64,000 nucleotides of DNA from Cyanophora paradoxa CCMP329. Lineage: Eukaryota > Plantae > Glaucophyta. Below the pieces are notes generated by a model. The model searched no databases. It was given only the letters and a program-made list of their open reading frames with translations, and was not told where the DNA came from. Position numbers and translations under genes: made by a program. Within the stretch, counting starts at the first letter, position 1, and every line of letters starts with the position of its first letter. This document shows positions 7,997 through 64,000 of this stretch, in pieces. Where the stretch lies: positions 480,321 to 544,320 of the forward strand of contig QPMI01000044.1 in NCBI GenBank assembly GCA_004431415.1, written 5' to 3'.

Positions 7997-10900
7997 TCAC
8001 AGGCGGATGGCGACCGCGGCGGCTCTGCCATCGTCGCCCTTGGGGGGTGCCCTGCCTGCCCCTGCATTCGCCTGCTGCGGAGCGCCCGCACCGGCGATAG
8101 CGCTCGAGCTGGAGTTGCCGGCCCCGCTCGAGGTCGAGCCCGAGAGATCGATGGGCCGCACGGGGAGGTTGGGGATGGGGAGCGCGGCCCCCGCGAAGCT
8201 GTAGGCGTAGCGGCTGCTGGGGCCGGCGCCGCCGACGGCGGGGAGCGCCGACATTGACGCTGCCGCGGACAGTGGGAATCCGAAGGGCGGGAGGGCATGG
8301 GGCCGGGAGGGGCGGCCGCTGGCGCCAGCGCTCCGGCCCGTTGCCAAAGTTGCATCCGGCACGAAAGATGACGGAGGGAAAGGTCGCTGGGCCGACTTGG
8401 ATCTGGAGGCCTCTCCAGCGCCGTCTTCATCATATATGTCGATCAGGCCCTCAATTTGTCCGAAGCTGTTGCTTCGCCTTCGGTTCATTCGGGCCTCTTC
8501 ACGCGCGGATTTCGTGGGCCTAGGCCTCGTGGGTGTGCCCGAACTCGAACTCAGCGAGACGACATGTACAGTGGCTGCGTGTGGTCTGCAGCTGTCCGCG
8601 ACATCTCGAGCTCCGTGGGAGCGAGGCTGCATCTCTATTTTTGGATGCACTGTCAACGGCTCGCTTGCGACCGATCCGTCGACGACGGAGTCTTCTCCTG
8701 TATCGGCGTCGCGGCGCGGCTTCTGCGTTTCGCATTAGATTGGAGCTTTGAAGTGCGCCGTTTTAGTTTAAATTTCATGCGATTAAAGGGAGCGGTCGCT
8801 CATCACCTTGACGAAGTATCGCGCGGTGAGGAATGCGACTGCAATCTGGCCTCCGACCTGCCGCGAGCCGCTTCGTCAGCAGCGGACGAGTCGCGATCGC
8901 GAGATGGACAGCGTCGCAGTTGTAACGTGCGCACGGCGATGGCGGTCTGCGTGAGGGACGACAGGTCCGCCAGCATGTCGGCCACCGTGGCCTTCACCTT
9001 GCGGTACACCTGCGGCAGGGCGCGTCAACACGAATGACGCGCTGTCGACTCGCGAGCGGCTGGAGGCGAGCGCACCATGACGTAAATGTTGTCGATGTTG
9101 AAGAGGACGCGGAAGGCGACCGACTCTCCAGCACACTCCGGGTCGGAGAGCGGTTTCGTGAACGAGCAGAGGGCCTGGCAGCAGCGGGCCGGAGCGAAAT
9201 GAGATAAATACTGATGAGATTGAAAGGGGTGGAAATCAGGAGATACGCACGAAGGATCCCTCGCCCTTCTCGGCCGCGCGGTTGTCAGCTGGACGCAGGG
9301 CCGCGTCGTACCGCGGCGTCCCGTCGCGCTCGTCCTGTAAACGCGCGCGCCTCATCGTCAGATGCATGCGCGCAAACCGCGGCGCGGGTACAAGCAACCG
9401 TGACGTTCAGACCTCGAAGTGCAGCGGGAATAGAGACACGGGGATGGTGACCGGGAGCGTGCCGCGGAAGACGGAGAACTCGGCTTGCGAGGTGGGCACG
9501 ATCACGCCCTCGATGGAGAGGTTAGACGGAACCTGCTTCGCGCATCAGTGAACGCAATTACAACAACCCAGCTTCATGCAAAGACGAACGTGGATGGCGT
9601 AGTTGATGGCGACCGCAAACGCGAGGCGCGATACGAGGCGGAAGTCGACTGTCACGTTGCTGGCCGCCAAGAGACGGCATTGTTTGCACCGCCAGGTCAC
9701 TCTGCGCGCACGCATGAGGAATCACAGTAGTGTAGCTGTTGCATGCACGTCGAAGCATGAACGGACAAGCAACTACGGCGTGCAGCGATGAAGCTCGTTT
9801 CAGCAACTGGCTCGGGCGAACCATCGACGGGCCCGATGCCCGAAACGAACACGTCGACACCAGCGCGCCCGTCTAAGCGGGATAGCGATGCGTTGCCGGA
9901 GCTCTCTCCTACTCGTCTCACGATCTGACAGGGACCTGCACGAGTGCCCATGATCAGAAGCTCTGCGAATCAACAAAAACAAAGCAGAAAACAATTCAAA
10001 GTTCACCGGCGAATCCAGCGAAGGAGGCCGTGACGTTCAGAGGGCCGGCGATGCTGGCAGCCGACGGCGAGGCCCCCGGCTGGAGCGTCTGGATGATACT
10101 GAAGTTTGCGATGGACTGGGCATGCGCACGAATGCCGAGCGGTCAGAGCCCACGCATTGCAGCATGGCACATCTCGGAATTGAAGCGCACAAATTGCAGG
10201 AGAACGTAGCCGGCTGCGATGGCGGCGAGACCGATGCCGATCATCGTGAAGACAACGCCGAAGCGAGTCTTTTCGTTCTCCTCTTCGTCCTCCGCCGCTT
10301 CCTTTTCTTCCGTTTTTGCGGACGCGCTTTTCGCTCCACCTTTTACTTCCTCGCGCTTGGTCGCGATGAGATCTGTATACAGCCGGTCGAGCTTGAGGAT
10401 CTGTCGACCGAGATGTTGGTGGCGGATATGAGCTTGAGAGAAGGCACAAGTGCCAGCGTACACGCTCAAATCGACGTTTTTTGCGCTCTTTGCGCTCGAG
10501 CTTCCGCTCCGAAGGAGCAGCCAACGGAATCTATGCGGGGGTTGATTCTACAATGCGAGATTCTTACGAACGAACGCATCGAGCGCACCTTCAAATACGA
10601 GTAGAGGCAGACGCCGGCAAGGATGAGCAGGACTCCAGTGCACGCCACCAGCACCGCGAAAATCTGTGCACGGTACGAATTTATTTTCCAGGCCTAGGAG
10701 GCGTTCTGCTCTCTGGACAACTCCGCACCAGGTAAAGGCGCTGATTCGCGACCTCCTCCGTGCGTATTTCCTGCCGAGTCATTCAATTCATGGCATTCGA
10801 CCGATGCAACTCCAGACCACGCATGCGCACGGGCCGGAGGATGGTGGCCGAATTTGTGTCGTATCTGCGCGTGCGAATCGCATCGTTTCGAAGAACATGT

Positions 10901-13900
10901 CATGCATTTTAAATCACAAAATGTCCAGATTATAAATAAGAGAATTCCGCACGTCACGCTCTCGCTTATGAATGTCATTTCGCTGTCCTCGCTTGTAATG
11001 CGCTTGAAGAAGTCTCCAGCAGCCAACAGCCTTCGCGTGCCCATCAGGCCCCGCCTCTGGGTCCCTCCTGGCTGCGCAGGCTCCGCTCCTGCTGCCTCGC
11101 GGCCGGCGGCGAGGGCTTCAGTGATGGTCTGCGATATGAGCTTCTTGAAATCCGATATGTCGATTGGCTCCGATGTCGCGATCGGGCACAGCTGCGTCGA
11201 CGAGCACGGCGTGCAGGCCGTGGACCCCGCGGCAGCCGCAAACGTGCCGGACGGGCTGCACAATCCCGAGTTCGAATTCGCGCAGTAATATCCATGAGCT
11301 GGAAAGCAAAGCGCTGCACGGACCAGGGCTCGCAGTAGGCCAGCGTCGCGTTTCGGAAGGTGCCTTTCGCACAGACCTGCCGTTGCTATGTTGGCAGCGG
11401 AGAGACGGAAACGAGTCGAGCACCAGCGCACCTCGCAGAACGTCTGAGACTCGTCCGACTGAGTGAAAAAATAATGACGCTCGTCAGCGAAACGAATGGA
11501 CAGACAGACACTGAGAGGCAATGCGACCCACCACAGTGCCCTCCAAACTGCGCAAAGCATCAGCTTGTGAACGAAACGCGGTCGAAAGCAAAGCAGGCTC
11601 GAAGCCCACCAGGACATACATCCCGTGGAGCCCGCTTGCGAGATCGTGTTCACGGGGCACGGCAGGCAGACGTCGCTGTTCGCAGGCAGGTACGTGGAAG
11701 AGGGGCACGGGATACAGCGCGTGCGGCTGTCGTCCGAGATCGATCCGGCAGCACAGCGGGTGCAAGTGGCATCTGCGGCGCAGATTCAGGATTGCGTCCA
11801 AGCAGCTTAATGGCGGTCTGGAAGAGCGGACCGCCAGCGCGTGAGGTAGTCAGAGGCGGGCACGGCTCACAAACGCCCTTGCTGGGGTACGTTCCAGCCT
11901 CGCAATCTGCAACAGAAAGTTCGGGTGTCGAGATGATTGCCGAATATTAATTCGAAGAATTGTAAGCAACAGCTTCTCACCCCTGCAGTCCGCGCGGTCT
12001 TCGCGTGGCACCTTTCCCGACGGGCTGCTCTCAATGTGATCAGAATGGAGGCGATATCATTGAAAGAATTCATGCATGAAGTTCGTAGAGACTTTCATGA
12101 GACGCACCACTGCTCGCACTCGCCGTTGCCTGGGGCCCGCGAGACGGTTCCAGGGCCACAGGGAATGCACCCAGTGCTGTTGCTGTCTATCGGCCTGTAG
12201 AAACCCTGCGGAACAAAGTACGATGTTACTTTAGCAGCCCTGCGCGCTGGATAATTTTGGGGCCGAACCAGCGCGCAGGGCTCGCAGACGCGGCGGTTCG
12301 CCGACGAAGTGTACCCCGCTCCGCACGGGCTACACTCGAATGCCGTTCCTGGATCGGGTGCAATAAAGGTCTCGGGACACTTGAGCACGCCAAGTCAGTT
12401 TATGTCACTGGAAAATTAGAACGAGAGCAATGCACACCCGTAAGCAGGTCTGCGTGCCCTCTGGCATGAATGTGCCTGGCGTGCACGGTATGCACTCGCT
12501 GGAATCTTCGGAGGCGTACGAGCCGGGCTGGCATGGCCGACACGCCTGCGAGCCCACTGGCGCCCAGGTCCCGATCCGGCACGGCAGGCAGATGTTCATG
12601 TTCCGAGGCTTGAACGTGCCCGCTTGGCATGGATTGCAGCGCGTGCTGTAGCCGGGCGCGTTGGTTGCAAACAATTGGGAGGCGGTTGATCGCAAACGAG
12701 ATTAGAAAGCGAGCAATCTCCGCTTACCGGTCGGCGTTGGAGATCTCGCCAGGAGCACACGCTGTGCACGCGACAAGGCCTCGCTCCTCTGCGATTGTTC
12801 CCTCCTCGCAGAGCCGGCAGGTCCGCGTGCCGTTGGCCTCCATATATCCAGCGGGGCACGGAACGCAGGTCACGCGATCGTCGGAGGACTGTGTCCCCGG
12901 AGGGCTGCAAGACAAGTTCGAGATATTGCTGCACGCAAAGGCATGGCAGGAAGAGAGGGTGCATGCAAACCACAGATCGCATTCGGCACGGCCAGGCGCG
13001 TTGGAGTAATAACCATTCGAACAAGAGAGGCAGGAACTGCTGTTTGCAGGCCTCGCTGTACCGCTCGGGCACGGCGTGCACTCCTGGTGTGTCTCGTCCG
13101 CAACGGACCCGGGCTCGCTGTGCAAATGCGTAAGTGATATAGCAATAAACAGTGCAAAGAAGACAAACAGTTTCATGGCTCACCATTCCTGGCAGGAGAC
13201 CATTCCCAGAAGAGGGGCGTACATATTTCCGATGCAATCGCGGCAGCGCCACTCCTTCTCATACGTGCCCCGAGGGCACGAGAGGCACGTTGCGAGGTCG
13301 TCGCTCGGGACCGCGCCCCTCGCGCAGACTGTGTAGTTCCTCGAAGCGACCGGGGCCACTGACCCCACCGGCACTCGCTGGCATGACACCATCGGCGCGT
13401 GCCTGTAGTAGCCCACCATGCACGCTGCTCACGCTCGCCGTCAGCGTGCACTCATATGCATTCTCCGTACAGAATGCAACGCACGCGTGCAGCTCTGTTT
13501 GTCCGCCGCGGCCTCGTAGCCCTCCGGGCACGTCTCGCACTGGTCCTTCCCGGGGTCGGACGTGATCGTGTTCGGCGGGCACGGCAGGCACTGGTCATCC
13601 AGCTGGTAGCTCCCTGCGAATTCGAAAGCAGCCCATGGCGTTAACGAAAATGCATGCAAGAGCAGTTGCTCGCTCACCGCCTCGGCATGGCGTGCACGTG
13701 GCTTTCGTGCCATCAGGGACAAAGCCAGGTAGACAGACCGTGTAGTTGGAAGAGCCGATGCGGGCAACAGCCCGGACAGACACGGCTTCGCAATAAGCCA
13801 TCGCTCCATGTCGGTAGGTGCCTGTCGGAATCACGAAGGATGTCAATAATTCATAACATACACAGAAACCCAGATGAAAAAGACTGCATGACCAGCTGGG

Positions 13901-16900
13901 CAGTCGAAGCACAGGCGCAGGTCCGCTGAAGCGTACTTGCCGTCCGGGCACGCCGTGCAGTTTGAAGACGCCTCGAAAGGGGCGACCTCGTTCTGCACGC
14001 ACGGAAGGCACTCCCCAGCGCGCCCGTATTCCGCGGTTCCGCCACGGCATGGAAGGCAGGCCTGCAGAAATACCCGCGGTGGGCGATAAGTTAGATTATG
14101 GCAACACTAATTCTGAAAATGGGGGAAGAACCTTTCTATCAGGCGGTGAGACGTAGCCAGGACCGCACTTTTCGCAGCCCTTCCCATCCGGGGATGCGTA
14201 ATCTATTAGGAAACCGTTATTCAAGAGAATATGACTTCCGTGCGCATATAAGTCGCTGACCTTCATCGCACGGCAAACAGACGGCCTCGTTCGGCGGAGC
14301 GCCGAAACCCGGGCGGCACCACGTGCATCCGTCCTGCTTGTCCGTCGTGACTTGTCCCTGCCCACGGGTGAGCGTTTTGATTTCTATGCAAGCAAAGAAA
14401 TATGCGACTACCGGTGGGCACGTATTGCAGGGACCAAATCGCCCCTCCTCGGCCCAAGTGCCGGGGGGGCACGCCTCGCACGGCCAGAGCTCCGAGGGCT
14501 GATGCGTCCCCGCCGCGCTGCGGGTGTGCAGTCGACGTCGTGAGTACATTTGAAGACCGAAAACCTATATATGAATTCGCGGGACGACTCACCATGGCGC
14601 GCAGTTTGACAAGTCTGGCGTGGGGTACGACCCCTTCGAGCCTGGGATGCACTAAGCCGCCGATAGCAATCAAATGCGCACATTAGAGAGAAGACGCACA
14701 GCTCGAGCACGAATCAAGCGCGCCGTAACCGCTGTACTTGTTCGAAGGACATGAAACGCATGCGAGAGGCGCTCTCTGAAGATATGTGCCGGGGAAGCTG
14801 AAGGGGGAATGTCAACCGCACTTGCAGAAGCGCCGAAATACGGAATGTAAATAATCACAAACCACGGCACACACTGGAACGTCCATTTAGCCTAATAAAG
14901 GATAGCGGATCAGTACGACAAAGCCATTGTCGGATTTCATTCTGTAATCTAGCGTTATTCTCAACGCACAGAGGGGGTAAAAAGATTCTCAGCGCAAGGT
15001 GTGCACGGGTCGCCCGCCTTCATGGCAAAAGTGTGCTGTGGGCAGTCTGCCGAGAGCGATTGAGCGTGACAATCAGGACGCAAGCTCAGTGCACAGCTGG
15101 GCACTGCGCACCGTAACAAGCCGAAGCACCGAGGTCCGAAGACGTTCCAGCGCTGCACTTGGTGCATTCCGTGGCCCCCGCCCCGCTGAATGTCCCATTC
15201 GGGCAGCTGCCGCGGAAATCAAAGCGGAGTCAGAGCGCGGCCGACGAGCCAGTCACAGTCAGGGTGCAGGGGCCCGGCGGCCGGCGCACAGTTCGGCGTC
15301 TTCATCAAGTAGGAGGCCTTCGCGCGGCGAGTAGCGGCCTGGAGCGAACGCAACCTGAGTCAGCCAGCACGCAAGGCAACGCAAGGGCCATTTTAGTCAA
15401 ACTAAAGCACCGGCCGACACGTCGATGCAAAGATCTGCAATGGCAACGGAACGGTTGAAGAGGGCAGCCTGGAGAGGATTAGGCGAGCTGAGCCAGCCCT
15501 TCGCCGCGGCAAATCCCTCACCTCCCAGTTCCACCTGGTTCCTGGTTTGCATCGCGAGTGCAGTTTGACCACGTATGCCGGCTCGGAAACGACGAAAACC
15601 ACCTGACCACCGACTCAGTCTTTAATAATTTGCGAAAATGTTGTATGAACACTGATCATAGGCCGAACCCAAGGGAGTTCGGAAAAAGGGACGCTTGGGT
15701 CGTTCTCAAACATCCGGCCGCTGGAGTAGTCGTCGACGACTGTTGCGTACAATACGTTTGCCTGAATGACACGTCAGTCGCAATCGATTGGGGCGGGCCA
15801 TGGAGAAGCCGCAAACCGGGAAGTTTGACACGATCGTGGTCACTTTCACGGTCGCATTGCTGAACGGCCCACTAGCATCGATATCTACGTTCTCAAGGCG
15901 GATGAGCCGCGAGCCCGGGGCTCTCTCAGCAGCCCTCTTCATTCGGCGGCTGTGCACGTATTGCGGCCGCGTCTCTCGGTCCGACGCGAACGTAAAGACA
16001 CGCGTGTTTGCCTGCGTGTGAACCTCCTGCACGACGCTGCAGCGAGAAGTTCCTTGAATCGTACGAATCACGAAACAGGCTGCGGGCGGAACGCGCACTA
16101 CAAATTTCCGTCCTTGTATACAGCGGCCGCCACCTGAGACGTTGCGTGTTTCAGCTTGCGGCATGCGAAGCTCAACGATCGGGTGACAAGCATACCGAGG
16201 TCCACTCCTGCCTCGTGCCGCGCCAGTCCACGGTCTTGTAAATCTGAATGCTGCCGTCGATGTTTGCTGCCGGGGCGGCCATCCCGCTCTGGAAGGCGTT
16301 TGCCTTGCGGACGCGAGTGACGCGATCGCCGGTGACCCAGAAGCTGTACTTCGAGTTGGGCGGGTCGACCCAGCGGCCCTCGAGATACCCGTGGCCGTAT
16401 CCAGCGTGGAGCGGGCGCTCGTTTTGAACCTGCTCGCCCGGTCAAAGCATGATCCTCCCCTCGCAAATTCTTAAGCAAATGAGCACAATCCAGTGGTCTG
16501 CGAGCGCAAGCTGCTCGGAGCGGAGGACCCGCGGTGCCGTGTGCGTGAAGGCGGCGGTGCGGTACGTGGGAGGTGCAGGGAAGGAGGGGTTGAAGCTCCG
16601 CACGCCGACGGGCGCATCGGAAAAGCGCGACGGGTCGACTTCCCACGTGAACATGGCAATCACGTGTGCGACAGTGCGCGCTCTGCAGATGCCCGAGACA
16701 AGCAAAACGGGGCATGCCCCAGCGACCGATGCGGTGGGGAAGAACGGAATCCTGAGGCGAGTTGAATACCGAAAGAGGGCAAGGTGGACGCGCATATCGT
16801 CGAGGCTCACCGAACGATGGCGTGGTACAGGATCGGTCCTCCGTCAGCAATGCGTCCGTCGGTGTGCATAGTCTGCACCGAAGCCCCCACAGGGAACGAG

Positions 16901-19900
16901 TCGGCAAAGAAGGCGCCGTTCTCTTGCGGCCATCTGAGGCAGGCGGTCAATCGGATGGCGACTTATCATGAGTGAGAGCGAGCGGCTACTAAAGACGCAC
17001 GGGACGCTCTTGTAGACCGACTCGGCGGAGGTGGTGAAGCCGGCGGGCGCGAGCGACGCCAGGTCGAACTTGAGCAGAGCAATGCCCAGCGGCAGAGAGC
17101 AGACTTTGAGGAGCGGCATGACGGAGGGCCCGCCGCTGTTCCGGAGCGCGGCAAAGGAAGAGAAGAAAGCAACCCCGCGCTGCCAGAACTGGAAGAACTG
17201 GAGAAAATGTCAGCATGCGCACAGAACAAGAAGGTTAATTATGAAACATCAAAACAATCAGGCCCACCCGCAACTCCTGCAAGAGGAGCGCGTTGAACGA
17301 CGTCATGTCGGGATACGCCCGCCTGACGTCGCTTGCAGTCTCGTTGCCCTCGAACGTACGGTCGGACGGTTCGGCATCGTAGAAGTCCAGGCAGTTCGTG
17401 GCGCCTGCTCTCAGTCATTATTAGTGTTCAAATGCACAGGAAATGTAAAACCCGGATTCGAAGGGAGCGCACCGTAGAAGAAGTGGCTTCCGAAGGCCAC
17501 TGAAGACGACGTCTCGGCGCCTGGAGTGGCCCACGCGAAGCCAAAGAGCTCTGGCTGGAGGCGGAAGTGGCGAGAGCGGTGCTCGGTGATATTCGCATTG
17601 CTTCCCGTCGGCTGAGAATTAAACAAATGAGATTTCTCCGAACATGAACGCTTCGAAATCCATTACGCCTTACCGAAATGGAGAATAGGTTCATATTCCC
17701 AAGCATTCCAGCCCAGTTGTACCTGCATCGAATTAAGATGCACCACTTGAGCAGCGATTGAAAAACGCTGAGCACTCTTCCGTGGGGCTCGCGGAAGCAA
17801 GGCCCGAAACCTTCAGAGGGGCTCAGCGAATGTACGGACAGGCTCGATCGACGCGATCAGCCGTATGAAATGCACGCACCGCTTCGTAGAAAGTTCGCTC
17901 GTAGGCGGCGTAGAAATGGCGGAAGTCGTGAGTCCACGCGGCGGCCGCGCTCATGAAGTCGTAGGGTCTGGCGCCCGAGCACAGGCCCGCCGGCCAGCTC
18001 CGAATGGGCCCGTAGGGGGCCGTCGCGCAGCCGCCGAACGCGTAGGTCGCCCACCGTTGCGCGGCGTACGAGTAGCAGCCGAACCCAGCGCAGTCGGAGG
18101 GAGGGCGCAAGACGGCCGCGACGGTCGAGCCGACGAGATCGCTTGCGTTTGCGTACGCTTGGGATGTCCAAGGCCAGTTGCTCTGGTACCGGATAATTAT
18201 AAGCAATAGCAAATCTGGTATAATTCATGGGAAAATAATTTCGAGCCTGGAATGCCATGAGGTTAGCAGGGGCGAAGCGGGCATCGCAGTCCTTGGCCGG
18301 CCACTGAGATACAAGATCACGCGAAATTCAAAATTCCTATCGAAGCCATGTCGTTACCGGAGTCATGGCTGAATACGCGAAATCGGTGGGCTTGGCATCC
18401 CCCAGCAGCTAATTATAAAGCAAAAGAGATTAGAGCCACGAAAGCACAAAACCTCAGCGACACTTAGAAGTTCGAGGGCGCACATTGGCGAGCCGTTGAA
18501 CGAAGGAGCAGCGGTTGCTGTCGAGATCGAAGTCGCAGTACGAGTATTCCGACGTGGTGCGCGTGATAAATCCGAGGCGATGAGACGCGGGCCTCTGGCC
18601 CACGAGATAGTTCGCGAGCGGAACTGCGAACACGATTCGAACGCTCTCCTGCGGATCGACCACGTTCCCTGCAAAAGATCTCACAAATTGCACTCCGGCA
18701 GAGGCACTACATCGCACTCTAGATCTGGCGGCACTGCGCACCAACGCGAGAAAAGGCGTTGCTCGCGCCCGTCTTCCCCGAAGGAAGAAGCGCATTCTGT
18801 GCTGCGATGGAGTTGCCCTGAATGTAAATACAGTCAGATCGTTTTGGAGCGTGCACGACTTGAAGAACTGTTGAGCACCGGGGGGACTGTGGCGTTGAAG
18901 GCGGCGGACGGGGGGGACACCTCGCCACTGCGGCCTCGCGCTTTCACTGAGCAGGAAACGACGTACGATCCGCCATAGGAGAGCTCCACCGAGACAGACA
19001 CAGCGGCACCAGCCGCGTCCGCGTCGGTCACAGAAGCTGACCCCGCATAGCCTCCCGTCGGGGCGCCTGGCGCGTCGCAAGCCGCGTCGAGAGTCGCGAT
19101 CCCGACGCCAGCAGTGAAGTTAGCTGTCAGAAGAACCGTCATCGGGCCCGTGGAAATCGCCGACAAGACAAGTGGTGCAGGAAGAACGCTGAGACACGAG
19201 ATAAGATTTGCGTCTCCAACGAGTTTCGACGCAGGAAGCTCGCTGGTCGTGCTGAGCACTGTTCGATTTATCTGAGGTCATGTGGCTGTGAGACTTTGCA
19301 GAGCGATCACACGGCCTGAAGTTTTTCGTATTCGAATTCGCTTTCGAACCGGACAGTCGGAGAACATGTACTCGACGATGATGGGCGCCGGCCCGGCCAG
19401 CGGGGCGCTCGCGCTAGCGTACGCGAGACGGACTTGGCTCGCGGAGAGCTCCGAGCTGTAGACGCGGAAGGCTGCGCAAATGAACGCGTCAGGGCGCGAC
19501 CTGGAATTGTTCTCTACTGGAGTATTCACCACCGATGGTAGCGTCCTGGATGTAGGGATCTATATATTGCTGCGTAAAGACGGAGACTGTTCGCCGCAGC
19601 AGCGATCGATGCCAACGGCCGCGGATTGTGAAAAACGACCTCACCGGGTAGCTATAGAATGACTTCCCAACAAACGCCATGGATCTCCGAATAGACGCAA
19701 GAGCCGGTACTGACTGTGTAGCGACGAGCAAGCCGTTCTTGTACGCCTGTGCAGTGCACTGTCCGCCGCTGGGGGCGCTGTACGTGACGACGAGGTGCGT
19801 CCAACGCTCGAGCTGTCAGAGAAACTTCGTCAAAATTGCTTATCATTGACGTTTCACTCATATATCGGAGGCAAAGCGGCCGGACCGGAATGTATGACGT

Positions 19901-27491: not shown

Positions 27492-28679
27492 CGACCGGAA
27501 GGCGCTGGAGGCGCGCGCGTGAATGAAGTGGAGAGATCTCGAAACAAGCCGAAGTGGCGAACCTCCCGCATGCAGGCGTGCGATCGCGAGGAGATGGCAT
27601 AAGATTACATGCGTTGAATTGCGGCGGGGATGAGGCCGGGCTTCGTTCCTGCCTCGCCGGGACGGCCGCAGTTAGACAGTTAGAGTCGACAGGGCGGGAC
27701 AGCCTTCAGCTAACGCGAGCGCACGCGCGCGTGCACCTGCGCATATGCATGCGCGTGCGGGCGCCGCGCCCGCGCGGCGAGCTCGCCCGGGCCCGCGTCC
27801 GTTGCCGTGCCAGATCTAGACGGCGCGCCTTCCTGCCTTGTGCAGCCGCGGCCCGGAGGGTCTGCAGGCCTAGGCCGCGGGCGTTGCACTCCCCTGCCGA
27901 CGTCGCCTGCGGCTGCGGCGCTGGCCGAGAAGGCCGGTATCCGGAGTGGAGCTCGAGCCCCGAGCTGGAACATCGGATCGCGAGTGAGGATCACCGGATG
28001 ATGATCGGTACCGGTGCGGTCCGACGGTCGGTGATTCGAACAGATTCGCTTCTGTCCTCAGCCTTAAGCTTGCCAGTCTGAGGCGGCTCGAGCTCGGCGT
28101 CCGGTCCGACGGTCTGAGGCGGCTCGGCGGCCTTGCAGCCGCTGATCTAGATCTGCGGCGCGCTATAGGCTAGTTATAGCTGTGTGGCTTTCGCCCGGGC
28201 CCCCATGGCCACCGCCTGCAGCTGCCTAGGCGAGCGAGCCCTCGGAGCTGCAAGTGGCCCGCAACGTCGACCGTACCGTAGTACGCGTCGGACCTTTCAG
28301 TCACTCGCACCGCGCATCATATGCATGGCATGCATGCGGCGCTTAGGCTGGCTTAGCTATAGCTGCAGAGTCAGTCACTGAGTGGCAGACTGGCAGTGAC
28401 TCAGTGAGAGCACGTGCAGACGCATTTCAACTTTGAGTCACTGAGTGAAGCTGCTTCCGAAGTTCACCCGGTGACCGTGGTCCGTGGCTCTGCGATCTTC
28501 GAATTCGAGACTTCCGAAGCTGGCCACTGTGGCCAGTGCCCTAATTAATATTAATCTAGAGGCCGCCGGCGCCGCCGGCCGGGCCCGGCCCCTGCAGCTG
28601 CCGGCGCCGCCGGCCCCGGCCGACCGTGACCGCCGATCGCGAATGGATTCGCGATTCGCGAGGCGTACTTTCAAGTTCA

Positions 28680-28912
28680 CCGTCTTTACGACGGCTTTTT
28701 TTAGCCGTAGTTTGTTTTTGCCGTATAAATTGCATGCATGCCGAGAGGCCGAATTCGGCAATTTAGCTTCACGGCAATTGCTTTGGGGGGGTAGGTATTT
28801 TCCTACTAGGCTAGCGCGCCATAGAGCAGAATCTGGATTCGGCAATTAATATTTATTGCGACTCGCGATCGGCGACGGCAATTCGGGTTTCGGGCGAATT
28901 CGGCAATTTTAC
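28680..28912. mobile_element. Probable DNA-transposon/MITE end with subterminal repeats
   Basis: Five copies of cggcaatt between 28751 and 28910. The last 18 bp (28895-28912) are the exact reverse complement of 32038-32055. No transposase seen. Confidence 0.4.
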
Positions 28913-29911: not shown

Positions 29912-29980
29912 ATACAGCAGTACGCGGGCGCGGGGGGGCCTATCAGTACTGCTGTATTGGTTCGGACCCCTTTTTACTAG
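29912..29980 (+). other. 12-bp perfect inverted repeat followed by CTAG-T (possible Helitron-like 3' end)
   Basis: atacagcagtac (29912-29923) pairs with gtactgctgtat (29946-29957); CTAG at 29977-29980 followed by T. Spacing is longer than the usual Helitron end. Confidence 0.3.
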
Positions 29981-30374
29981 TGTATACGTAGGTTTTAGCT
30001 CTGCGCGGTGCTAGGGGCTCGCAGCTTCAGCTTATGTACGTCCAGTATGTGCTCACAAATGCGAGTACAATGAGTGGTTCCGGAACGTTGGGCGTCGCGG
30101 GCCGCGCGCAGATCGCTCAGCTATGGCCCTGCAGCGCAGCATCTCTCATCTGGCCGAACTCCCAGCTTTCTAGCGCGCAGTTCTAGCGGTGCGGACCGTA
30201 CACTTCTCGGACACGTCCCCCGCTCGTCCGCTCGGACACGTCCCCCGCCCCTTCCCCGTCTTTCATGATCTCATGATCAGTGAGTCAGAACAATGCTTAA
30301 GCTTAGAATTTTGTTCGAGTTCATATCAGCGGACAGCTTCGAAAATATTCTGACGTGGAGCCATCTGACTGCAA

Positions 30375-54100: not shown

Positions 54101-57100
54101 AGTGAGACAGACACATCGGCACCAGCCGCGTCCGCGTCAGTCACGGAAGCTGACCCCACGTAGCCTCCCGTCGGGGCGCCCGGCGCGCCGCAAGCCGCGT
54201 TGAGTGTATCGATCCCCACGCCAGCCGTGAAGTTTGCCGTCAGAAGTACCATCATTGGGCCCGTGGAAATCGCCGACAGGACGAGCGGTGCTGGGAAGCT
54301 GATGGGCCCAGGTTTGGGTTTAGCATCCGAACACGGCGCGGTTACGTCTGCATCTCCGACGAGCTTGGCTGCAGGGAGCTCGCCGGTCGTGGTGAGCACA
54401 TTTCGATTTATCTGAGCGGTGGTGAGACTTAGCGCATTGTTCATATAGCCTCATTCTTTGCAAATTTGGGATCGAACCGGACAGTCGGAGAACATGTACT
54501 CGACGATGAGGGCGCCGGTCCAGCCAGCGGGGCGCTCGCGCTAGCGTACGCGAGACGGACTTGGCTTGCGGAGAGCTCCGAGCTGTACACGCGGAAAGCT
54601 GCGCAAATGTACTTGTCATGGGTGAAAGGGAAGTCTGCATATTAAAGTTTTGATTGCAGTAATCACCACCGATCGTAGAGTCTACAACAAATGGATCATT
54701 CTGTGTAAAAACGGATTTTGTCAGTTCATTCAAAATGAAACACGCTGCAAACGGGGTTACGGATGGCCTTTGAGGGCCTACCGGAAATACAGAGCGCCCG
54801 ATGTAGGCTATTGATCCCTGCATCGAATTCAAAGCCACTGCGGAGCCCGTAGCGACGAGTAAGCCGTTCTTGTACGCTCGTGCAGTGGAACGCCCGCCGC
54901 TCGGTGCGCTGTACGTGACAACGAGGTGTGTCCAGCGTCGGAGCTGCCCGACCACACATCGTCAAAGGAGCACATTGTAGGTGTATGAGAATCCAGTGGA
55001 AGAGGAAATTTTCTCACCGGGATGTATGAAGTTCCAGTAGCGGCGGAAAAACTCTGTTCGAAGGCAGAATTCTGCATGGTATTGTGTTTCAGGGCATATC
55101 CGTCTCGGCCTGGACATCCGCAGTCGTAGTAGCACGGGCAATGGTAGTAGTACTGCAGCAGTTCAAGAATTCAGCGTTTATGTGTATATATGCGCTGCGA
55201 AGGGGGGAAAGGCCAGCGGACCACGGAGTTGCTTGTGCTGGTTCCTATGTCCCACCAGCGGGTCGCCCAATCCGGCATAGCGTTCGGATAGATCCAAGAC
55301 TACAGAAGGGTTAAAACTAAAGAAACAATTCAACACAAAATGAGTGCGGCTCACTTCAAAGGAGAGAGGGTACACGAGAGTTCGGCTCGCGAAGAAGTCG
55401 CTCATGTCTAAATACCTCTGGGCAGCGGCCCCTCCAGCCGTGCCGAAACGAAGCCCTGGAGGCCGCGTGAATGGAAAGCGAATCGCGTTTGGTCGACATC
55501 GGGGCTGAAGGAACCTAGGCCGGCGGCCGGAGGGGGGCAGGCCATAACGATGTCGCCCACAAGCTTGCCAGAGCGGCCCCGCCCGCTCGAGTCGGGCACG
55601 TCCTTGCCGGACAGGGCGCCTTCGAGCTGCGCCGGGAAGCAAAAATCAGCCGAGCACCCCAGCAAGCTCGCCCAAGCTACGCTCACCGTGCTGCCGCAGC
55701 TGTCCAACTTGTAGTGCAGCTCGACGGGCACAGCTGGCTGCCTGCCCATGAAGGATTCCATGACTTGGGCGGCCGTCAGCGCCGCGGAGTGGATTCGGAA
55801 CCCTGCCAGCGTTCGGTTTTCACGTGGCGTCAAGGACGCGACGAAAGTTTGCGAATGCACCAGAGTAAAAAATGTCGACGGGCTACCCGGAGCCATCCAC
55901 ACACTGCGTCCTATGCGCAGGATGGACCTGCCAACATTCGAAATCGAGGCACCAGCTCCGGCCTGTCCGGTCTTCAAGTGCGGAACCTGGCTCCCGTTTC
56001 GATAGGTGCGGATCTCGGATGCGGTGAAAACAAGAGCCAGGTGATGCCAGCAGTTGTCTTTAGGGATGCTGTAGTCGTCTCTAAACGCAATTGTCTCGTA
56101 GTAGATCGAAGAAGTATAGAGATTTATCATCAATGCCATTCCTGTAACGCCGGATTTACTCTGCAAAATTCGGCGGACTCATGATCAGAGCCAGACAGCT
56201 TGTGGAAGGCAATTACGCCTGCGCATGCGCACGTGGCAATTGTCGTAGTACCCCGCCCCTCCAGGCGGACAAAAGGTCACTATCTACATCAGCATAAGAT
56301 TCCTTGACGAGCGTGCGCATTATATATATTGACGAACAATGTTATGGCCAGTGCCCGACGGGTTTCCAATGTCTGACGGGTAAAGCCCGAAGTGTAATTA
56401 ACTAGACAATTGACTGCAATGCATTGAAAAAGCACCTATGATTTGGTCCCAGCTTCCAAAAGGGGCTTGCCGTGGAATTTTGACCCTGCGTGATCATTGT
56501 GATGATGAGCTAGTGAGCATATGCACGAGCACACCACAAAATCGCACCACAGGTCCAGACTAAAAGGAGTGCCCATCGGAAGCCTGGAGCCTCGATGTAT
56601 CTTCCGTTACCCATATCGCTTGTCCCAAAGTAAACCCTTGCCAGAGTTCAGGACTATAGAAGCCCGAGAGCAAGGCGAGTGAGGTGTATAGTACCTGCAG
56701 CTGGCACGGGGCACTGCACAGACGGTCCGAGGTCCCCGTACATCGTTCCCGGCGTCCTTTGCCCGAGTAGTCCACCGCCTGAAACAATCACGTGAGTGAC
56801 GGCTCGACGATTGTCAGGGATGTCGCCAGTGGCGCCCGAGCGCACCGTGCCTCCGCACGTGTCGAACTTGTAGTGCAACTCGAGAGGGGGCCGGTCCGGG
56901 GCACGTTGCCTTGCGCCACGTCGGCAACCTGGGCCGCCGAGAGCGCAACGGAATACACCCGGAAGTCGGCGAGCTCGACGCCGTACGCGTACGGCCCGAG
57001 CCGGCGGCCAGCCGGCGCCGACGTAGTGCACGGTCCGAGTCCGCTTGGGAACGTGCCCGTCCCGGGCGTGAAGCTCGAAGCCCGTGCGCTGGGGCGGGGA

Positions 57101-60100
57101 CGCCGTCGAGGAACGTGTAGTACGCGTCCGGGGTCAGAACCAGCGCGACGTGGTGCCAGGAGCCGTCCGCGGGATGCTGTGCTCCGCGAGGAAGAGAGGC
57201 ACGCGCTGCTTCAGCTGGGTCCCGTCGTACATCGAGAGCAGAAGGGTCTCGTAGCCTGCGTTCCTGTGCGGCTGCGCACGATATCAGTCCACATGCAAGT
57301 TTGACCATGGATCGCTTTCAATATTAATATGCAGGCAGGCTAGAGGACTAATAGTACAATCATTACATGGCGTCTCCGGTCGGTAGAAAACAATGCAAGT
57401 TCGCACCTCGCAGTCCGCATCGGAAGGGACTGCACCCGGAGGACCGCAGAAGCTCAGAATCTGCCGCCGCAGCCATCGTCAGACAGCCATTGCAGCTAGC
57501 GCAATAGGGGACGTACGATGTTGTCCAATCCAACTCCGCTGCCAAAATCAACGAGACGCAAGAGCGCGTTCGGATTCGCTTGACTTCTGCTGATGCGTAG
57601 CCTGCGCGCACAAGAATCCATTGATGATTTTATTGCAAAATTGCCAGTAAATAGTGAAACGCTTGAACCAGAACGCAATCGTCAACGGCGCGCCAAGCTC
57701 AAACGACGGCGACACAAGGAACCGCTCAGTCTGGTCTACTGTGCTGCTTGGCAGAACCTTGGTTCCAAAGACCAGGGCTGCCGCTCACGTCGGCGGACTG
57801 AAGGTGCCGCGCAAAAGCGGACGGGAAATTGCAAAGCGCCCAGAAGCGCACATGTCGAAGGAGGCGCGAGATTTAACTGGCACTGCCCGCCGACTTGAGT
57901 TGCATCTCCGACAATCGATCCGAACTCCATTCGCTGACAGGTCTTCGGCCTGTCCAGAACTCAGATGCGCAGGGATAGAAACCTGCACACCGGCCGCGTA
58001 CCGTCTGGTTGCAGCCGTCGAACGCGTAGCGGAGTTGGAGCGTCGCGTCGTCGGCTAGCCGCCATGGAACACGTCGACTGCCTGCGATGCGGACAGAGCG
58101 CTACTGTACACCCGGAAGTCTGCGAGGAGCCCGTGACGCGGGGCGGGGCGACAGCAACGAAGGATGACGAACCGGAGAGGTATCCGTCGGCGAGGCCCGA
58201 TTCGCCCTGCTGGCCTCTGGAAATGTAGTGCTTCTCGCGCGCAACTTGCGGGATGGACCCAGCGCCGCCCGCGAGCCCATTGCCAGTCTTGGAGTGAGGC
58301 CGAACGGAACCATTTCTACAAAGCGCAGATAACTATCAGCGCACAGCAGCATACAAACAGTGGGAATTGATTACAGGTAGGTGAGCGTTTCAGAAGCAGT
58401 GAAGACCAGAGTGACGTGAGAGTATTCTCCAATCTACAGGGTGCGAAAGCTCAGCGTGGAGCTCTGGCCGGAGAAACACCATGAAGGCTCTCTACCGGAA
58501 TGGCGTTGTCGCCTCCGAACGCCTCGAGATGGACGACGGCGGTGCTGCCGCTGTGAGCGAGCACAATTAGGCTCAATGCACCGTCCTTGCCTGCCCGCAC
58601 GATCTCATTAGCAGGATATTCTCCAATCGGCTGCAAGGACACGAAGCCATCGCACCGAGCCTGTGATCTGCGCGTTGGAGATGGTCCGATCGGACACGAC
58701 GGCGCCTTGGGCAGGAACCCGACGACAATGCTGTCCAGGCCAGACCCGCCGGCGCTTTCGAAATCCAAGATACGCCTGCGGAAATGCATTCGAATTCAGA
58801 TTCAGGTAGTCGGTAATCTTTGCATAATCGCTATTCGATGTTGATGGAAGCACGCACGCCCATGCGGTCTGAGACTTGCGGGGATTGATCCAGAAGAGAC
58901 GCTGAAGGGAGAGCCAAGCGTGAACGTCGGGACGGCAACGTAGCCTTTCCACCCGCTTCCCCAGAAGAAGACCGAAGAAGCTGTCCGGAAATCTGAGCTT
59001 TTAACACAAGCGTCACGGGCGGGCACAAGATTGCGAACCAGGCGCTTGACAGCTGCGCGGTAAAGAGACGTCGCCGTAGAGCTGTGCATGTCGCTTCCAG
59101 CCGCTTGAATCCAGCGCCTGTATATAACGAGCGATTAACAACAACACATGATTAGTATCAATTTGCTTAAATCGTGCACCACAGTGCCGCAGCCGTCAAA
59201 CGCCAGCCGCTGCTCGAGTGGCGCGGCGGTCGCACTTCCCGCGAGGACGTCCGCAACTTGGGCTTGCGCCAGGGCCGCGGAATAGATCCTGAAATCTGCA
59301 GCGGCGCTGAGTAACAAGATGTGTCGCATTGATTAGATAATTCGCAGCAAACCAGAGAGGCAGATGCTACGGCGCCCGTCTCGCCCCAGAGTCGCGAGCG
59401 ATCCAGTGCTTCGAACGCTGCAATTTCGGCCACAAAGCGGCTGCACCTGCGACGCTCGTTCCTGTTTTCGAGTGGGGACGCAGCGTTCCGTTCAGGTACG
59501 TCGTAATCGCATCATCCGCGATCGTAATAGTGACGTGATGCCACGCCCATCGACGGGGACTCCGTTGTCGCCTTCAGATAAAAGAACGGAACACATGCAC
59601 ATGAGCAACGGGAATTGAATTTAAGATGGCTGCGGCGCATGAGCGTACCCTGAAACAAAACATAGAAACTGTTACGATTTCCCCTGTGTAAAGGTTCATA
59701 AAAGGCTAGTCTTTCCTGCGGACGCCTGGCAGGCAAGCAAAGGTTACGAAAGCAGCAAGACTTTAATTTCGAGAAGCAAATATTAAGAAACGCCGGACCG
59801 AGCAAATTTGAGTGGTTCCTGTAGTTCCGTCTGTGAAAGAGCCGCCATCGGGACAATACGTCACAACGAATTGTCTGCCCGTTAACGTAAACAGCATGCA
59901 TCGATAACATTCAATTGGCACATAAAATAGACAATTAACCGTTTACCTTGCGGAGCTCCGGAGCCAAAGTCTACGATGCGTGTCCACATGACTGGCGGCC
60001 GCTGCAGCATAATCTGCACCGAGAACAGCTTCAGCGCCGCTCCCACCTAGGACTCGCGCGCGAGGCGCAATCACCAGAAGCTGAGGGTGAGTGGCGTGCC

Positions 60101-63100
60101 GAGCGTGAACGTTGCAGAGTCGATGTAGTCGTTCGTGGTCAACGTTCCACTCTGGCCAAAGTACACGCCTGTGTCAGAACTCGCGGCGGTCGTGACTGCC
60201 GTTCGACCTGGAAGACGATCGAAACGCGGATCTGATGTGAACACAGACCGACAAAGTACGCACTCGCGTTGTCAGCGGGCGGGACGCAGTCCGACAGAAT
60301 GGCGACGTCTCCCACAAGGCTCGCATGCCTCTCCCGGCCGCTAGTGTCCTCTGCCTGTTGAAGTGCAAGTTTCGCGCGGGCAGAAATGGATGCAAAGTCA
60401 AATTTAATTTGGTATCCAAGTACGTCGTTCCGCAGCCTGAGAAAGGCAGAAACAGCTGGACAGATGGGATGGACCTGGGTTGAGGGTCGTCTTGGTAGAG
60501 CAGCTGCACTTGCGTCGCAGTCAGAGCCTCGCTCCAAACACCGAAATCTGTCCACGTTTCAGCAGAGCGCGCGCACGTGCAAACCTCGAGATTAGAAAGC
60601 AGGATGTGTTACAGACCAGACATGTACATGTCTCGAGTGTCGAGCACCTTCACTTCCCAGCCGACGTCGACCCGAGCCAGTGGAGCGGCCGCGTAATGGT
60701 CGGAATGGACGCGGCGCGGCGGGGAGGGTCGTTCCCGTCTTTGTGTGCGGCGTCGCCTGCCCGTCGAAGTAGACGGTGATGAGGGAGTCGGTCACAACGA
60801 GGGCGACGTGGCACGACCGTCGACGGGATCGCGTTCGCCCCCGTGAACATCCGCAGCCGCACGACCAAGTGGAGTCCACCGCAGCGCCAGGCCCATGGCG
60901 TCGTTCCAGCGGGGCCTGCGGCGGCGCCGGCTTGATAAGTGGACGATGCCGCCGCGCATATGCCGCAAGCAGGACGGACATCGCAAGGAATATTGACAAA
61001 TTCTGCGTTTCATCGTAGTCCAAGCCGCCGGAGTGCAGAAATACCTAATGAAGAACTCAGCTAGACGACTAAACTTATTTAGTTTGCCTATTCAAGCACG
61101 GCGGATGACCAGTTAAGATTGTTGAAGACGATCTCATTCGCTGGAGGTGCGCCGTAGAATCAAAGAGGCGTTCATATGTCCTCGGAGTTTGCACCAACCG
61201 AATCCTGCGGTGCGCCGGTGCGCGTTAGCAAAGCGGCGCGTCCCGCGCAGCTCTGCAAAGACGCGCCAGGCGGCGACGGTGAAGGGGTGCCGAGCGCGAA
61301 GGGCGGGACCTCACGCGGCGCCGGAGGTCGAGGGAGGAGCCGAAGTAACCCTGAGGGATCCACTATCAGCCTTCAAAACAAGGCGATAATGCAGTCACGG
61401 CGCACCGGTGCGAGGGCTGCCGCACGCCTCGGAGTAACGACGTCGCCGACGGCGGTGCCGTGGCGGCCACGCCCGGACTCGTCGACCACCTGCCACCGTG
61501 CTCTCAAGACGCCTCGCGGCGGAGCAAACGGGCGCGGCTCGGATGCCCGACGCGAGCCACAGCACCTTGCGCGGCATCGCTGAAGGTGTAGACAGCTCGA
61601 GCGCCGCCGAAGGCGCGCTGCCCACATAGCGGTAGTCGGCGAGCACCTCCGAAGCGGTCAACGCTTGGAGAAGACGCGGAAATCTGCGGCGGCGAGAGTG
61701 CAGAATCAGAGCAGCGTGGGTTTGAATAAATTTCAGAGAAGAGTGCAGACCGGCCAAGTAAGTGTTGACCGGTACAACGCAGTGTTCACGTTGTCTTCCC
61801 GATTGAGAAGGTGCCCGCCAGACTCGCAATCGCACTCCGGGGAAAACCGTCGTCGTCGAGACCAATGTGCCATTGAAGTAGAAGGATGTAATCGATGCCG
61901 TGACGACAACCTGGACTCTTGCATCAGCTCATTGCATTCGGGCCGGCGCCAGCGATCTTCTAACGACATCGATCAGCGCTTACCGCGCAGTGATGATAGT
62001 TTTCGTCCACCTGCGAGCAGCCCACTCAGATTAAAAGATTTTCTGAAGTGCATATTCAAGCTTTTAGGATTCATGTCTGTGGTGTACGAACCGGAATGCC
62101 GCCGACTCCCCGAAAACGTCGAATTGGTGGTTGGATGGGGTAGGGGTGTACACGTGCAGTCGAACGCCGACTCTGCCGAGGCGGCCTGCATCGGAGTCTA
62201 TCAAACCCAGCACCCACCGCACGCCGCTTTCTTTAAAACGCTACGGAGCACGAGCCATCGACGTCGCATAGGTTTATGGCGAATCCATTTGTAGAGGGCG
62301 ACCCAAAGTCGATCAAGCTGTTGGACGCGGTCAAAGCCATTCTATTGGCGCTCTCAGAGATATCGATGTTATATTTTACCGAGTCCTTGTTGATTCGTTC
62401 GCTGCCGAGTCGATATCCAGAACGGAAGTCTACGTGAAGTTCATGATCAGACTCTACACGGCCACGCGAGAGGGGCGGACCTGGGGCGCCCAGCGCGAAG
62501 GTAGGAGCGAGACGTATCGCGAGGTTGCCGTGATGCTGCCGCCTGTGTGCTGTTCCGAAGTACACTCTGCGCAAAGCGAGCTCGCCAGGACACCAAGCGC
62601 CGCAAGCTATAGAACCGGCAGCCGTGGCGCCCTGCTTTGAGCCGGGCAGTCTCGAAAGGGTGCAAGTCTCCATACACCGTCGCGTGCCGCTTGTACGGCG
62701 ATTCGTCGAGTATCTGCCGCGGTCTCGCTCCTTAAGGGAGGGGCGCTGGAGAGAAGCATATGTACGCCGGCGGCATCATGTCTGCACCTGGCCGCGGCAG
62801 CCCTTCATCGAGTAGGAGAGCCTCGATCGGGGCGGCGGGACGATCCGTTGTAGCGGCGGCCGCCTCTGCGCAGACAGCGCACGGAGTTAGATTGCGAAGT
62901 CTGCGGGGCCGCGGGCGTCAGGCGCGCACGGCACCGGTGCGCCGGATGAGCGCACCGCGAGCCGCAAGAAACAAGGTACGGGTCGGAACCGATGGCTCTC
63001 CCGATATACATAAAAGCGCGGGTCCTGCTTGGGATTTGGCCGCACATGTATCCGGCACTATACACCCGTGAGAGCGGTCCCGTTCACTGCGAACCCGGGC

Positions 63101-64000
63101 AGTCAGAAACGCTGCTCCGCACAAGTGGCTCAAGCGGCACGCACGTACGCGACGACACTCGAAGAAGAGCAGGATGACCACGACGTGATGGAAATAGTGT
63201 CGATCTGCGCGAGATCCGGTATATCAATGATTGTTCAACATGTTCCAGCGCGGCATTTAGTTCGCCGCTGGCTGCTGATCGGAAAGCCTACTGCACCGCG
63301 CCTGGGTTCAACGAACCGGGACGCCACCCTGTCCGAACACGTTCCTGTTGACCACGATCGTGGGCCCATCTGTCATGTAGAGATGCAGGTTCACTTTCCC
63401 AGTGGCGGCCTGCGCCGTCGATGTCGGGCAACACGCGATCAGATGCAGATCTACAACATGGACAGGAGCCGCAGCAGGTGGCGCGTCCGCGGGATTGCAC
63501 GTTACAGTTCGTCCCGCCGACGGTGCAGGAGTGGATGGTAAGCTGGTCGTCGGTGGGCGAATCCCCGAATTCGAATATTCTGGAGGAAAATTTATCGCGG
63601 ATGGACGTCAGCAACACGGAGAAAAAGCATGCGGTACCGCGAGTACAACGCTTGGTTCTCCGGGATTCGGATCCAGAACTCGAAGGTCTGCAAGACAGAC
63701 AGCGCGATCGGCACAGGTGTAGGCGAGGGACGGCGAGACTGTCTCCCAACCAGCTGGGGGAGACGCACCATGGGGGTACCGAGGGGAAAAGGGCGGATAT
63801 CGGCGTAGCGCTGGGTGGAGGAGGGTGTGGACCCCGCGTTCCCGAAAAACGCCCCTGCAGGAGCTCATCAACATGAGCGAAAACATTGTAGAGAGGGGGC
63901 GCAGAGGGGGCGCAGAGGGCGCAGGGGGGCGGAGAGGGCAGAGGGGAGGAAAGGAAGGGGAGGGGCGGCAGAGGGAAAGCAGGACGGGGAAGGAAAGCAG
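36176..64000 (-). CDS. Giant cell-surface receptor-like protein, copy B (5' end outside window): at least 11 LamG-like modules, 2 FN3-like domains, central domain, longer Cys-rich stalk, 3 TM, tail; contains apparent frameshifts (assembly errors or pseudogenisation)
   Basis: Colinear paralog of copy A; ends ..AAAVAIHL* at 36176. Five further diverged LamG modules lie at ~57850-63810 (e.g. GAFFGNAGSTPSSTQRYADIRPFPLGTPM; SVFFWGSGWKGYVAVPTFTLGSPFS). A G/A-rich tract from ~63890 resembles the first intron of copy A. Confidence 0.72.
41280..45310 (-). repeat. Internally duplicated Cys-rich stalk block (~41280-43000 and ~43680-45310) in copy B
   Basis: QLEDSCLQCPLNSIVST..CEPCPFGTYRAADMSQCTPVPARAAA..SYQLEDQCLPCPPNTITSDPGKDQCETCPEGY occurs in both ORF 41543..42586 and ORF 43488..44390. 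Confidence 0.9.
49920..57783 (-). repeat. Two ~4 kb intragenic repeat units of copy B (B1 ~49920-53950; B2 ~53995-57783)
   Basis: Same order of three LamG modules plus FN3 as A1/A2, but B1 and B2 are clearly more diverged from each other than A1 and A2 are. Confidence 0.9.

Follow-up and report, generated by a model that had tools for sequence, protein, structure and literature searches.

What do the two giant genes that lie in tandem on contig QPMI01000044.1 of the glaucophyte Cyanophora paradoxa CCMP329 encode, and do they behave like the variable receptors of an immune-type system? The stretch analysed here (the window) comprises 64,000 nucleotides, positions 480,321 to 544,320 of this contig in assembly GCA_004431415.1, and a preliminary description of its letters had read it as a same-strand pair of modular, diversified lectin-array receptors with a candidate recognition or immune-like role in a unicellular alga. 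Organism and arrangement were rightly read: the source is a glaucophyte, and the window holds two tandem paralogs, copy A and copy B, both on the minus strand and about 8.3 kb apart. They are members of a genuine family of giant membrane proteins with lectin arrays, restricted to this lineage and maintained by selection; a part in immune-like or self/non-self recognition, which is possible, is unsupported by the present evidence.

The kinship of the two copies is evident from the DNA, introns included. When the window is compared with itself, 7845-13618 aligns with 36011-41714 at 89.3% identity and 13645-19814 with 44734-50809 at 86.6%, in both cases in the same orientation, and mismatches between the copies amount to 9.5% of the aligned bases. 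All Laminin_G_3 and Ephrin_rec_like matches lie in minus-strand open frames, and the C-terminal motif of the LamG domain, FRVYSxALSxxQ, is found at 14 places on the minus strand (six in copy B and, in its strict form, eight in copy A) and at none on the plus strand. Coding on the plus strand was discarded because every domain match and motif falls on the minus strand.

Gene models were built with a splice-aware dynamic-programming predictor, trained on the codon periodicity seen where paralogs differ and, in a later round, on the exons of the public model P0012 (tig00000178_g12823.t1, 3,298 amino acids), which maps residue for residue to 51148-36179 in 76 exons, 61 of which the predictor recovers exactly. 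The spliced models served for the counts of domains, cysteines and hydrophobic segments, and the searches used single exons or database proteins (P0012, P0013, P0019 and others). Another public model, P0020 (tig00000178_g12818.t1, 393 amino acids), maps exactly to 10782-8786; the two exact matches identify the window as part of C. paradoxa contig tig00000178. The genes are already represented in the public proteome, unnamed and fragmented, with copy A truncated at an internal methionine and copy B split into fragment models. The introns of copy A (36179-51148) have a median length of 65 nucleotides (range 50-149), with donors that mostly read GTGCG(C/T) after an exonic G, not GTAAGT or GTGAGT, and with the acceptor (G/T)CAG; genuine micro-exons of 16-35 nucleotides complete cysteine repeats in this copy. 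The genome report describes very short introns, a probably haploid genome and BRAKER1/Augustus models with RNA-seq training (PMC6704402). In window coordinates, with immunoglobulin-like abbreviated as Ig-like and transmembrane segment as TM, the two genes divide as follows.

7997-27490, minus strand: copy B, a complete gene of about 100 exons and about 3,700 amino acids in our own model, with the ATG at 27490 and the stop at 7999-7997.
27407-27490, minus strand: signal-peptide exon of copy B (MRPVAIALFLVLLPLRPLATSGAG...), with a hydrophobic segment, followed by the donor GTGCGG and unique in the window.
22941-26803, minus strand: distal module of copy B (LamG-a, LamG-b, LamG-c, Ig-like), with motifs at 26037, 24732 and 23528 and a Laminin_G_3 Pfam match.
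18879-22871, minus strand: proximal module of copy B (LamG-a, LamG-b, LamG-c, Ig-like), with motifs at 22008, 20690 and 19469 and a Pfam match.
15290-18817, minus strand: central domain of copy B, about 780 amino acids, family-specific, with no Pfam or PDB match and 94% amino acid identity to copy A.
11180-15206, minus strand: Cys-rich stalk of copy B, 835 amino acids with 100 cysteines, made of Ephrin_rec_like/TNFR-like repeats.
8807-11179, minus strand: membrane region of copy B (juxtamembrane segment, TM1, loop, TM2, second ectodomain, weak TM3).
7997-8722, minus strand: cytoplasmic tail of copy B, about 230 amino acids, rich in Ser, Pro and Ala, with the motif RRRSNSF and no recognised domain.
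36176-64000, minus strand: copy A, with its 5' end past the window edge and about 5,000 amino acids encoded in the window; P0012 maps exactly and P0019 aligns with 63687-36206.
57853-63864, minus strand: N-terminal extension of copy A, comprising five LamG units that lack Ig-like spacers and carry 23 frame changes relative to P0019.
49923-57777, minus strand: two (LamG x3 + Ig-like) modules of copy A, at 57777-53998 and 53929-49923, with frame differences at 54510, 51938, 51297 and 50147.
46365-49861, minus strand: central domain of copy A, with single-base frame differences at 47956 and 47407.
39320-46292, minus strand: Cys-rich stalk of copy A, 1,528 amino acids with 176 cysteines, including a block (41714-44734) with no counterpart in copy B.
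36176-39319, minus strand: membrane region and tail of copy A, with TM1 at 38804-38730, TM2 within 38545-38336, TM3 at 36994-36944 and the tail at 36865-36179.
17550-18000, minus strand: gene-conversion-like tract of about 450 bp inside the central domain of copy B, paired with 48600-49050 of copy A.

The anatomy proposed in the preliminary description is largely retained. Its lectin modules, six against at least 11, are borne out by six LamG domains in copy B and 11 in copy A (eight with the strict motif and three diverged ones at the 5' end), although the latter are to be read as homologous units and not as proven intact domains because of the frame changes in copy A. The stalks differ in length as described, the additional block of copy A being an internal duplication in itself; both copies have the central domain and the Cys-rich stalk; and copy A exceeds the 4,000 amino acids suggested for it, both in our model and in the full-length paralog P0019 (tig00020892_g14913.t1), which lies on another contig and has 5,129 amino acids. 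Two points held in part. A shared signal peptide had been assumed; copy B has one, but none is present for copy A within the window, where a 30-nucleotide probe from the copy B exon finds no second copy and copy A runs past base 64000. Three transmembrane segments had also been assumed, and two are strongly hydrophobic but the third is weak: in copy B, TM1 (10663-10589, hydropathy 2.84) is followed by a K/E-rich loop of about 85 amino acids, TM2 (within 10400-10191, hydropathy 2.23) by a second ectodomain of about 250 amino acids with five N-glycosylation sequons (10115-8935), and then comes the weak third segment (8857-8807). At the other end of copy A, the last 130 nucleotides of the window resemble the first intron of copy B, and LamG unit 1 has its first strand at about 63855. 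On the coding strand this first intron (26810-27400 in copy B, 63870-64000 in copy A) is pyrimidine-rich and of low complexity, and in both copies it translates as a proline-rich pseudo-open reading frame in every frame.

The exons of the two copies were also compared one by one. The 76 annotated exons of copy A were lifted onto copy B, and the 60 that lie inside aligned blocks all have a counterpart there: the acceptors are kept throughout, the donors save in two places with approximate exon ends, the length is identical in 53 exons, and no stops occur save in one exon, where the annotation of copy A is itself out of frame. The ratio of nonsynonymous to synonymous divergence (dN/dS) between the copies is 0.13 in the central domain, 0.11-0.12 in the stalk, 0.15 in the membrane region, 0.25 in the last LamG domain and 0.46 in the tail, and the overall dS of 0.20 is close to the intron divergence of 0.18. 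Low ratios (0.11-0.15), a dS near the intron divergence and the preserved exon structure together indicate that both copies have, to judge from their sequences, been retained by purifying selection since they split. Amino acid identity is 93-96% in the central, stalk and transmembrane regions and 78-89% in the LamG domains, in agreement with the contrast that had been drawn between diverged lectin parts and conserved membrane-proximal parts, and the dN of the LamG domains across modules (0.06-0.13 versus 0.02-0.035 elsewhere) is about threefold higher. At the level of whole domains, the dN/dS of LamG-a, LamG-b and LamG-c lies between 0.12 and 0.44, with no domain above 1; the LamG domains thus appear to evolve faster yet to stay under purifying selection at this level, and the diversified immune-type receptor of the preliminary description is not upheld, no diversifying selection being seen at the domain level.

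The domain assignments are supported by profile searches and, for the lectin units, by structure prediction. Single exons match Laminin_G_3 (PF13385) with 31.9-36.9 bits against a gathering cut-off of 27.6, and the scores rise to 165 bits in four stretches for P0013 and 322 bits in eight stretches for P0019:1-2700. In the stalk, Ephrin_rec_like (PF07699) matches P0012 in tandem and above threshold, with 197 bits in six stretches, so that both families named beforehand exceed their Pfam thresholds; TNFR_ELAPOR1_6th reaches 95 bits in the same protein, PF23091 is also above threshold in the CxxC-type repeats, and matches to NCD3G overlap the stalk and are accounted for by its Cys-rich repeats. 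The N-terminal LamG array has no relative in the PDB detectable by sequence. An AlphaFold model of LamG-c with the unit that follows it, built from 13 paralogous sequences, has a predicted local distance difference test score (pLDDT) of 81.5, and the best PDB matches of its LamG-c part in Foldseek are the LamG domain of PAPP-A and the pentraxins PTX3, SAP and CRP, with E values of 1e-7 to 1e-5, alongside lectin-type, carbohydrate-binding (CBM40-type) jelly rolls. The predicted structure confirms the ConA-like two-sheet jelly-roll fold that had been expected of the LamG units. The unit of about 130 amino acids that had been called FN3 is modelled, within the same confident prediction, as a beta-sandwich of 7-9 strands (residues 240-354), the Foldseek ranking being dominated by the LamG part; the FN3 name is not retained, since the corresponding stretches P0013:176-310 and P0013:925-1060 match neither fn3 (PF00041) nor any other Pfam family at E<=0.1, and Ig-like is the safe name for a 7-9-strand sandwich of this kind. 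No EGF domain is matched between the LamG units, and the sole cEGF match is below the cut-off and lies in the stalk.

The remaining modules are orphans. The central domain of about 780 amino acids is conserved in all paralogs and has no Pfam match, either in single exons or in any of 11 paralogs, and no PDB match in a profile search; its AlphaFold model from 11 sequences is a poor fold (pLDDT 41.8), for which Foldseek returns nothing below E 0.02, and the dominance of beta-propellers in the non-significant list may at most be a hint. The C-terminal 739 amino acids (P0012:2560-3298) match nothing in Pfam or the PDB; GPS, REJ, PLAT, GAIN, ion-channel and G-protein-coupled receptor (GPCR) domains are absent by Pfam from this part and from the central domain, and no TIR, kinase, death or other signalling or catalytic domain is found by Pfam in the cytoplasmic parts.

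The distribution of the family and the dynamics of its repeats agree with the modular, tandem multigene family that had been postulated, with varying modules and gene conversion. A central-domain exon (17880-18182, minus strand) searched against 1.84 billion representative proteins gave 11 matches, of which the eight with E<1e-10 are without exception EukProt models of Cyanophora paradoxa. Queries with the central domain and the membrane region find about 18 family models on 14 C. paradoxa contigs, including three tandem clusters (tig00000178, tig00020892 and tig00000246), and nothing outside Cyanophora among the roughly 1.8 billion representative proteins; the LamG-array query P0013:305-925, within the length limits of the search tool, returned only paralogs. 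The paralogs are between 40% and about 90% identical to copy A, and one of them, P0015 (3,076 amino acids), shows every part of the plan as well as a hydrophobic signal at its N-terminus. Literature searches found no published description of such a lectin-array family, as the preliminary description had supposed. On tig00020892, P0013 is near-identical to copy A and P0019 is about 89% identical to P0012 over their common part; this pair is either a second tandem pair or a partly redundant assembly of the copy A region.

Within the window, the two tandem module units of copy B, each of about 4 kb (18865-22777 and 22927-26806), are 95.4% identical in DNA, with a dS of 0.02-0.04 in the LamG parts and of 0.24 in the Ig-like part; this combination of low and high values indicates that the units were recently duplicated within the gene or homogenised, and that their history is mosaic. 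The corresponding units of copy A (49909-53984 and 53984-58000, also about 4 kb) are 74-82% identical to each other. The tract shared by the two central domains has 2-5 mismatches per 400 aligned columns, and its introns only 2 mismatches in 184 columns against an intron mean of 14.5%; because these introns are near-identical, recent gene conversion at copy B 17550-18000 is likely. Module number and stalk length that differ between neighbours point, as far as the sequences tell, to unequal crossing-over in the repeat arrays.

Before a function is considered, it has to be asked whether the locus might be an artefact or dead, with the two copies as mis-assembled haplotypes or copy A as a pseudogene. 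Copy A shows 27 frame changes relative to the reading frames of its paralogs, and copy B none relative to P0019 and P0001 across 85 exon-like blocks. The changes concentrate in the 5' lectin part, where LamG units 1-3 carry 18 of them and units 4-5 another five (the sites include 63175 and 60899-60865), followed by four downstream, at 51938, 51297, 50147 and 47407, and none in the stalk and membrane parts. Near-identical sequence on contig tig00020892 would also fit an artefact, and P0012 contains two out-of-frame patches (approximately 50231-50144 and 47384-47321), with which it spans two of the frame-change sites. P0013, from tig00020892, is shifted in frame by a single base against copy A at the downstream sites listed above and additionally at 54510 and 47956. 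On the other hand, 22 of the 27 changes are net deletions, mostly of a single base and, in those sampled, at short G/C runs, as expected when long-read errors stay unpolished in regions of ambiguous read mapping; indels of this origin are probably the most economical account, because a near-identical second copy would block short-read polishing, and genuine decay of the 5' lectin units of copy A is possible. Haplotype mis-assembly was discarded in view of the 9.5% divergence between copies that lie 8.3 kb apart on one contig, their different module number, the 3-kb stalk block present in one of them, the purifying selection and the genome reported as probably haploid (PMC6704402). Long-term constraint on both copies (dN/dS 0.11-0.15) and a fully intact copy B speak against a dead locus, and an artefact or a dead locus is accordingly regarded as highly improbable.

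As to what the proteins do, the reading best placed at present, and held with about even confidence on the strength of sequence and structure models, is that they are Cyanophora-specific, giant, non-enzymatic surface glycoproteins for adhesion, ligand capture or the building of a surface coat or glycocalyx. This reading is favoured because the LamG array, the Ig-like cap, the disulfide-rich rod, the sequons, the multi-pass anchor and the disordered tail all point to extracellular binding and spacing with no enzymatic output. The rod would act as a rigid spacer that keeps the lectin array at a distance of tens of nanometres from the membrane, where the LamG units may bind glycans or proteins, and two strong transmembrane helices and a weak one would enclose a charged cytosolic loop and the second ectodomain of about 250 amino acids. 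TNFR-type repeats comprise about 40-45 amino acids and extend about 2.5-3 nm each, and by analogy the stalks may be roughly 50 nm long in copy B and 90 nm in copy A. Paralogs with different array and stalk lengths would then differ in reach or specificity. The family itself changes through tandem duplication, unequal crossing-over in the arrays and gene conversion, under purifying selection. Several points weigh against this proposal: the third hydrophobic segment, if it does not span the membrane, would put the tail outside the cell; copy A carries frame changes that copy B lacks; the public models are Augustus predictions and fragmented; and the main function, be it enzymatic, channel-like or sensory, could reside in the central domain or the membrane module, both of them orphans.

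The same features lend themselves to other interpretations, each of which explains a part of them. An immune-like or self/non-self family, whose variable LamG arrays would be sensors of viruses, bacteria or mating partners, with variants produced by module shuffling and gene conversion, would fit the tandem multigene arrangement, the neighbours that differ in module number and stalk length, the threefold higher dN of the LamG domains and the existence of a conversion-like tract; however, that tract lies in the central domain, outside the lectin array, no LamG domain has a dN/dS above 1, no TIR, kinase, death or other signalling domain is found by Pfam, and the comparison comes from the assembly of one strain. 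Such an interpretation is unlikely, and it is not favoured over adhesion or coat formation because adhesins and coat proteins show such family dynamics just as typically. A wider version, in which glaucophytes independently evolved a surface recognition system with a repertoire reshaped by unequal crossing-over and gene conversion that discriminates microbes, viruses or mating partners, is a still more doubtful idea. The membrane module, the most conserved part (95% amino acid identity between copies A and B, 38-40% to distant paralogs), and the basophilic kinase site motif RRRSNSF of the tail would suit a sensory or mechanosensory receptor that relays force or ligand binding through the three transmembrane segments, the second ectodomain and a phosphorylatable tail, in the manner of polycystin-1, but there are just two to three such segments, no GPS, REJ, PLAT, ion-channel or GPCR domain is found by Pfam, and the NCD3G matches are explained by the Cys-rich repeats, which leaves a role of this type rather improbable. 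It is similarly not likely, despite the rod-like build with 100-176 cysteines, that the proteins are structural blocks of a knobbly plasma-membrane coat or of flagellar hairs whose LamG arrays pack laterally and do not bind foreign ligands: deep-etch electron microscopy of C. paradoxa reveals hairs on the flagella and a knobbly plasma membrane (PMC6704402), and the tandem pair FMG1A/FMG1B of Chlamydomonas forms a ciliary coat, an argument by analogy, but the Cyanophora proteins are unrelated in sequence to FMG1 and to known mastigoneme proteins, no proteomic link exists, and a multi-pass anchor with a long cytosolic tail exceeds the needs of a coat protein.

The Cyanophora proteins were also compared with characterised systems. 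The jelly rolls of PAPP-A LamG, pentraxins and CBM40 share with the Cyanophora units the Laminin_G_3 profile and the predicted fold, but the Cyanophora domains occur in arrays of 6-11, as triplets with an Ig-like cap, on a glaucophyte membrane protein. Long runs of CxxC-type repeats like those of the stalk are known from ELAPOR1/2, SVEP1, protist high-cysteine membrane proteins and the variant surface proteins (VSP) of Giardia, although the Giardia VSP profile scores 15.4 on the stalk against a cut-off of 31.4, below threshold, and none of these families has the LamG array, the three-segment anchor or the central domain. Neurexin and CASPR resemble the Cyanophora proteins in outline, with a LamG array outside the cell that is anchored in the membrane, a short tail with no catalytic function, and binding that depends on how the array is composed; the latter, however, have no EGF spacers, no LamG-EGF-LamG cassettes and no single transmembrane anchor, belong to the LamG_3 subfamily, are multi-pass and far larger, and show no orthology. 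FMG1A and FMG1B are giant, N-glycosylated surface proteins encoded in tandem, with conserved C-termini, more divergent ectodomains and a Cys-rich segment, and FMG1 consists of 34 Ig-like beta-chunk repeats of about 110 amino acids with a conserved Cys pair and no LamG (bioRxiv 10.1101/2024.09.28.615573). A green-algal origin was discarded, the exact matches being to Cyanophora paradoxa models, and so was identity with FMG1, the Cyanophora ectodomain being composed of LamG_3 and Ephrin_rec_like with no beta-chunk chain and no sequence relation. The signature of the polycystin-1/REJ mechanoreceptors, namely REJ, GPS/GAIN and PLAT around the first transmembrane segment, is absent. The tandem, lineage-specific surface receptor genes TgrB1/TgrC1 of the protist Dictyostelium are similar in arrangement, but the defining marks of receptors of this type are positive selection and extreme polymorphism, whereas the Cyanophora pair is measured under purifying selection: of the features of an allorecognition family, the tandem multigene organisation is seen and a dN/dS above 1 in the binding domains, at the domain level, is not.

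The surroundings of the two genes differ from them in composition and content. The G+C content is 56-60% across both genes, well under the 67.6% reported as the genome mean, and 65-73% in the opening 8 kb of the window, where an unrelated neighbour, an Armadillo/HEAT-repeat gene (2774-4756, minus strand), lies in a region of 67-73% G+C; apart from this gene, the open reading frames of 1-7900 have no family match. The copies are separated by the following element.

27700-36010, no strand assigned: spacer between the copies, not duplicated, with open reading frames that have no family match.

In the spacer, minus-strand open frames at 31380-30400 are protein-like with no Pfam match, and 32800-33750 is of extreme G+C content, of low complexity with Arg, Gly and Pro, and open on both strands.

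In summary, the two genes encode giant lectin-array membrane proteins that join a known binding fold of the LamG/ConA-like type and a TNFR/ephrin-receptor-like spacer with two orphan modules. In practical terms, the public models of these loci are broken into fragments and in part out of frame, and copy A has to be re-polished in the assembly. They are also a clear example of repeat arrays that evolve by unequal crossing-over under purifying selection. If the wider recognition system considered above were true, it would be the third independent invention of modular variable receptors in Archaeplastida. Glaucophytes are one of the three primary-plastid lineages, and almost nothing is known of their surface receptors and adhesion molecules; the family offers an entry point to how a wall-less flagellate alga contacts its surroundings.

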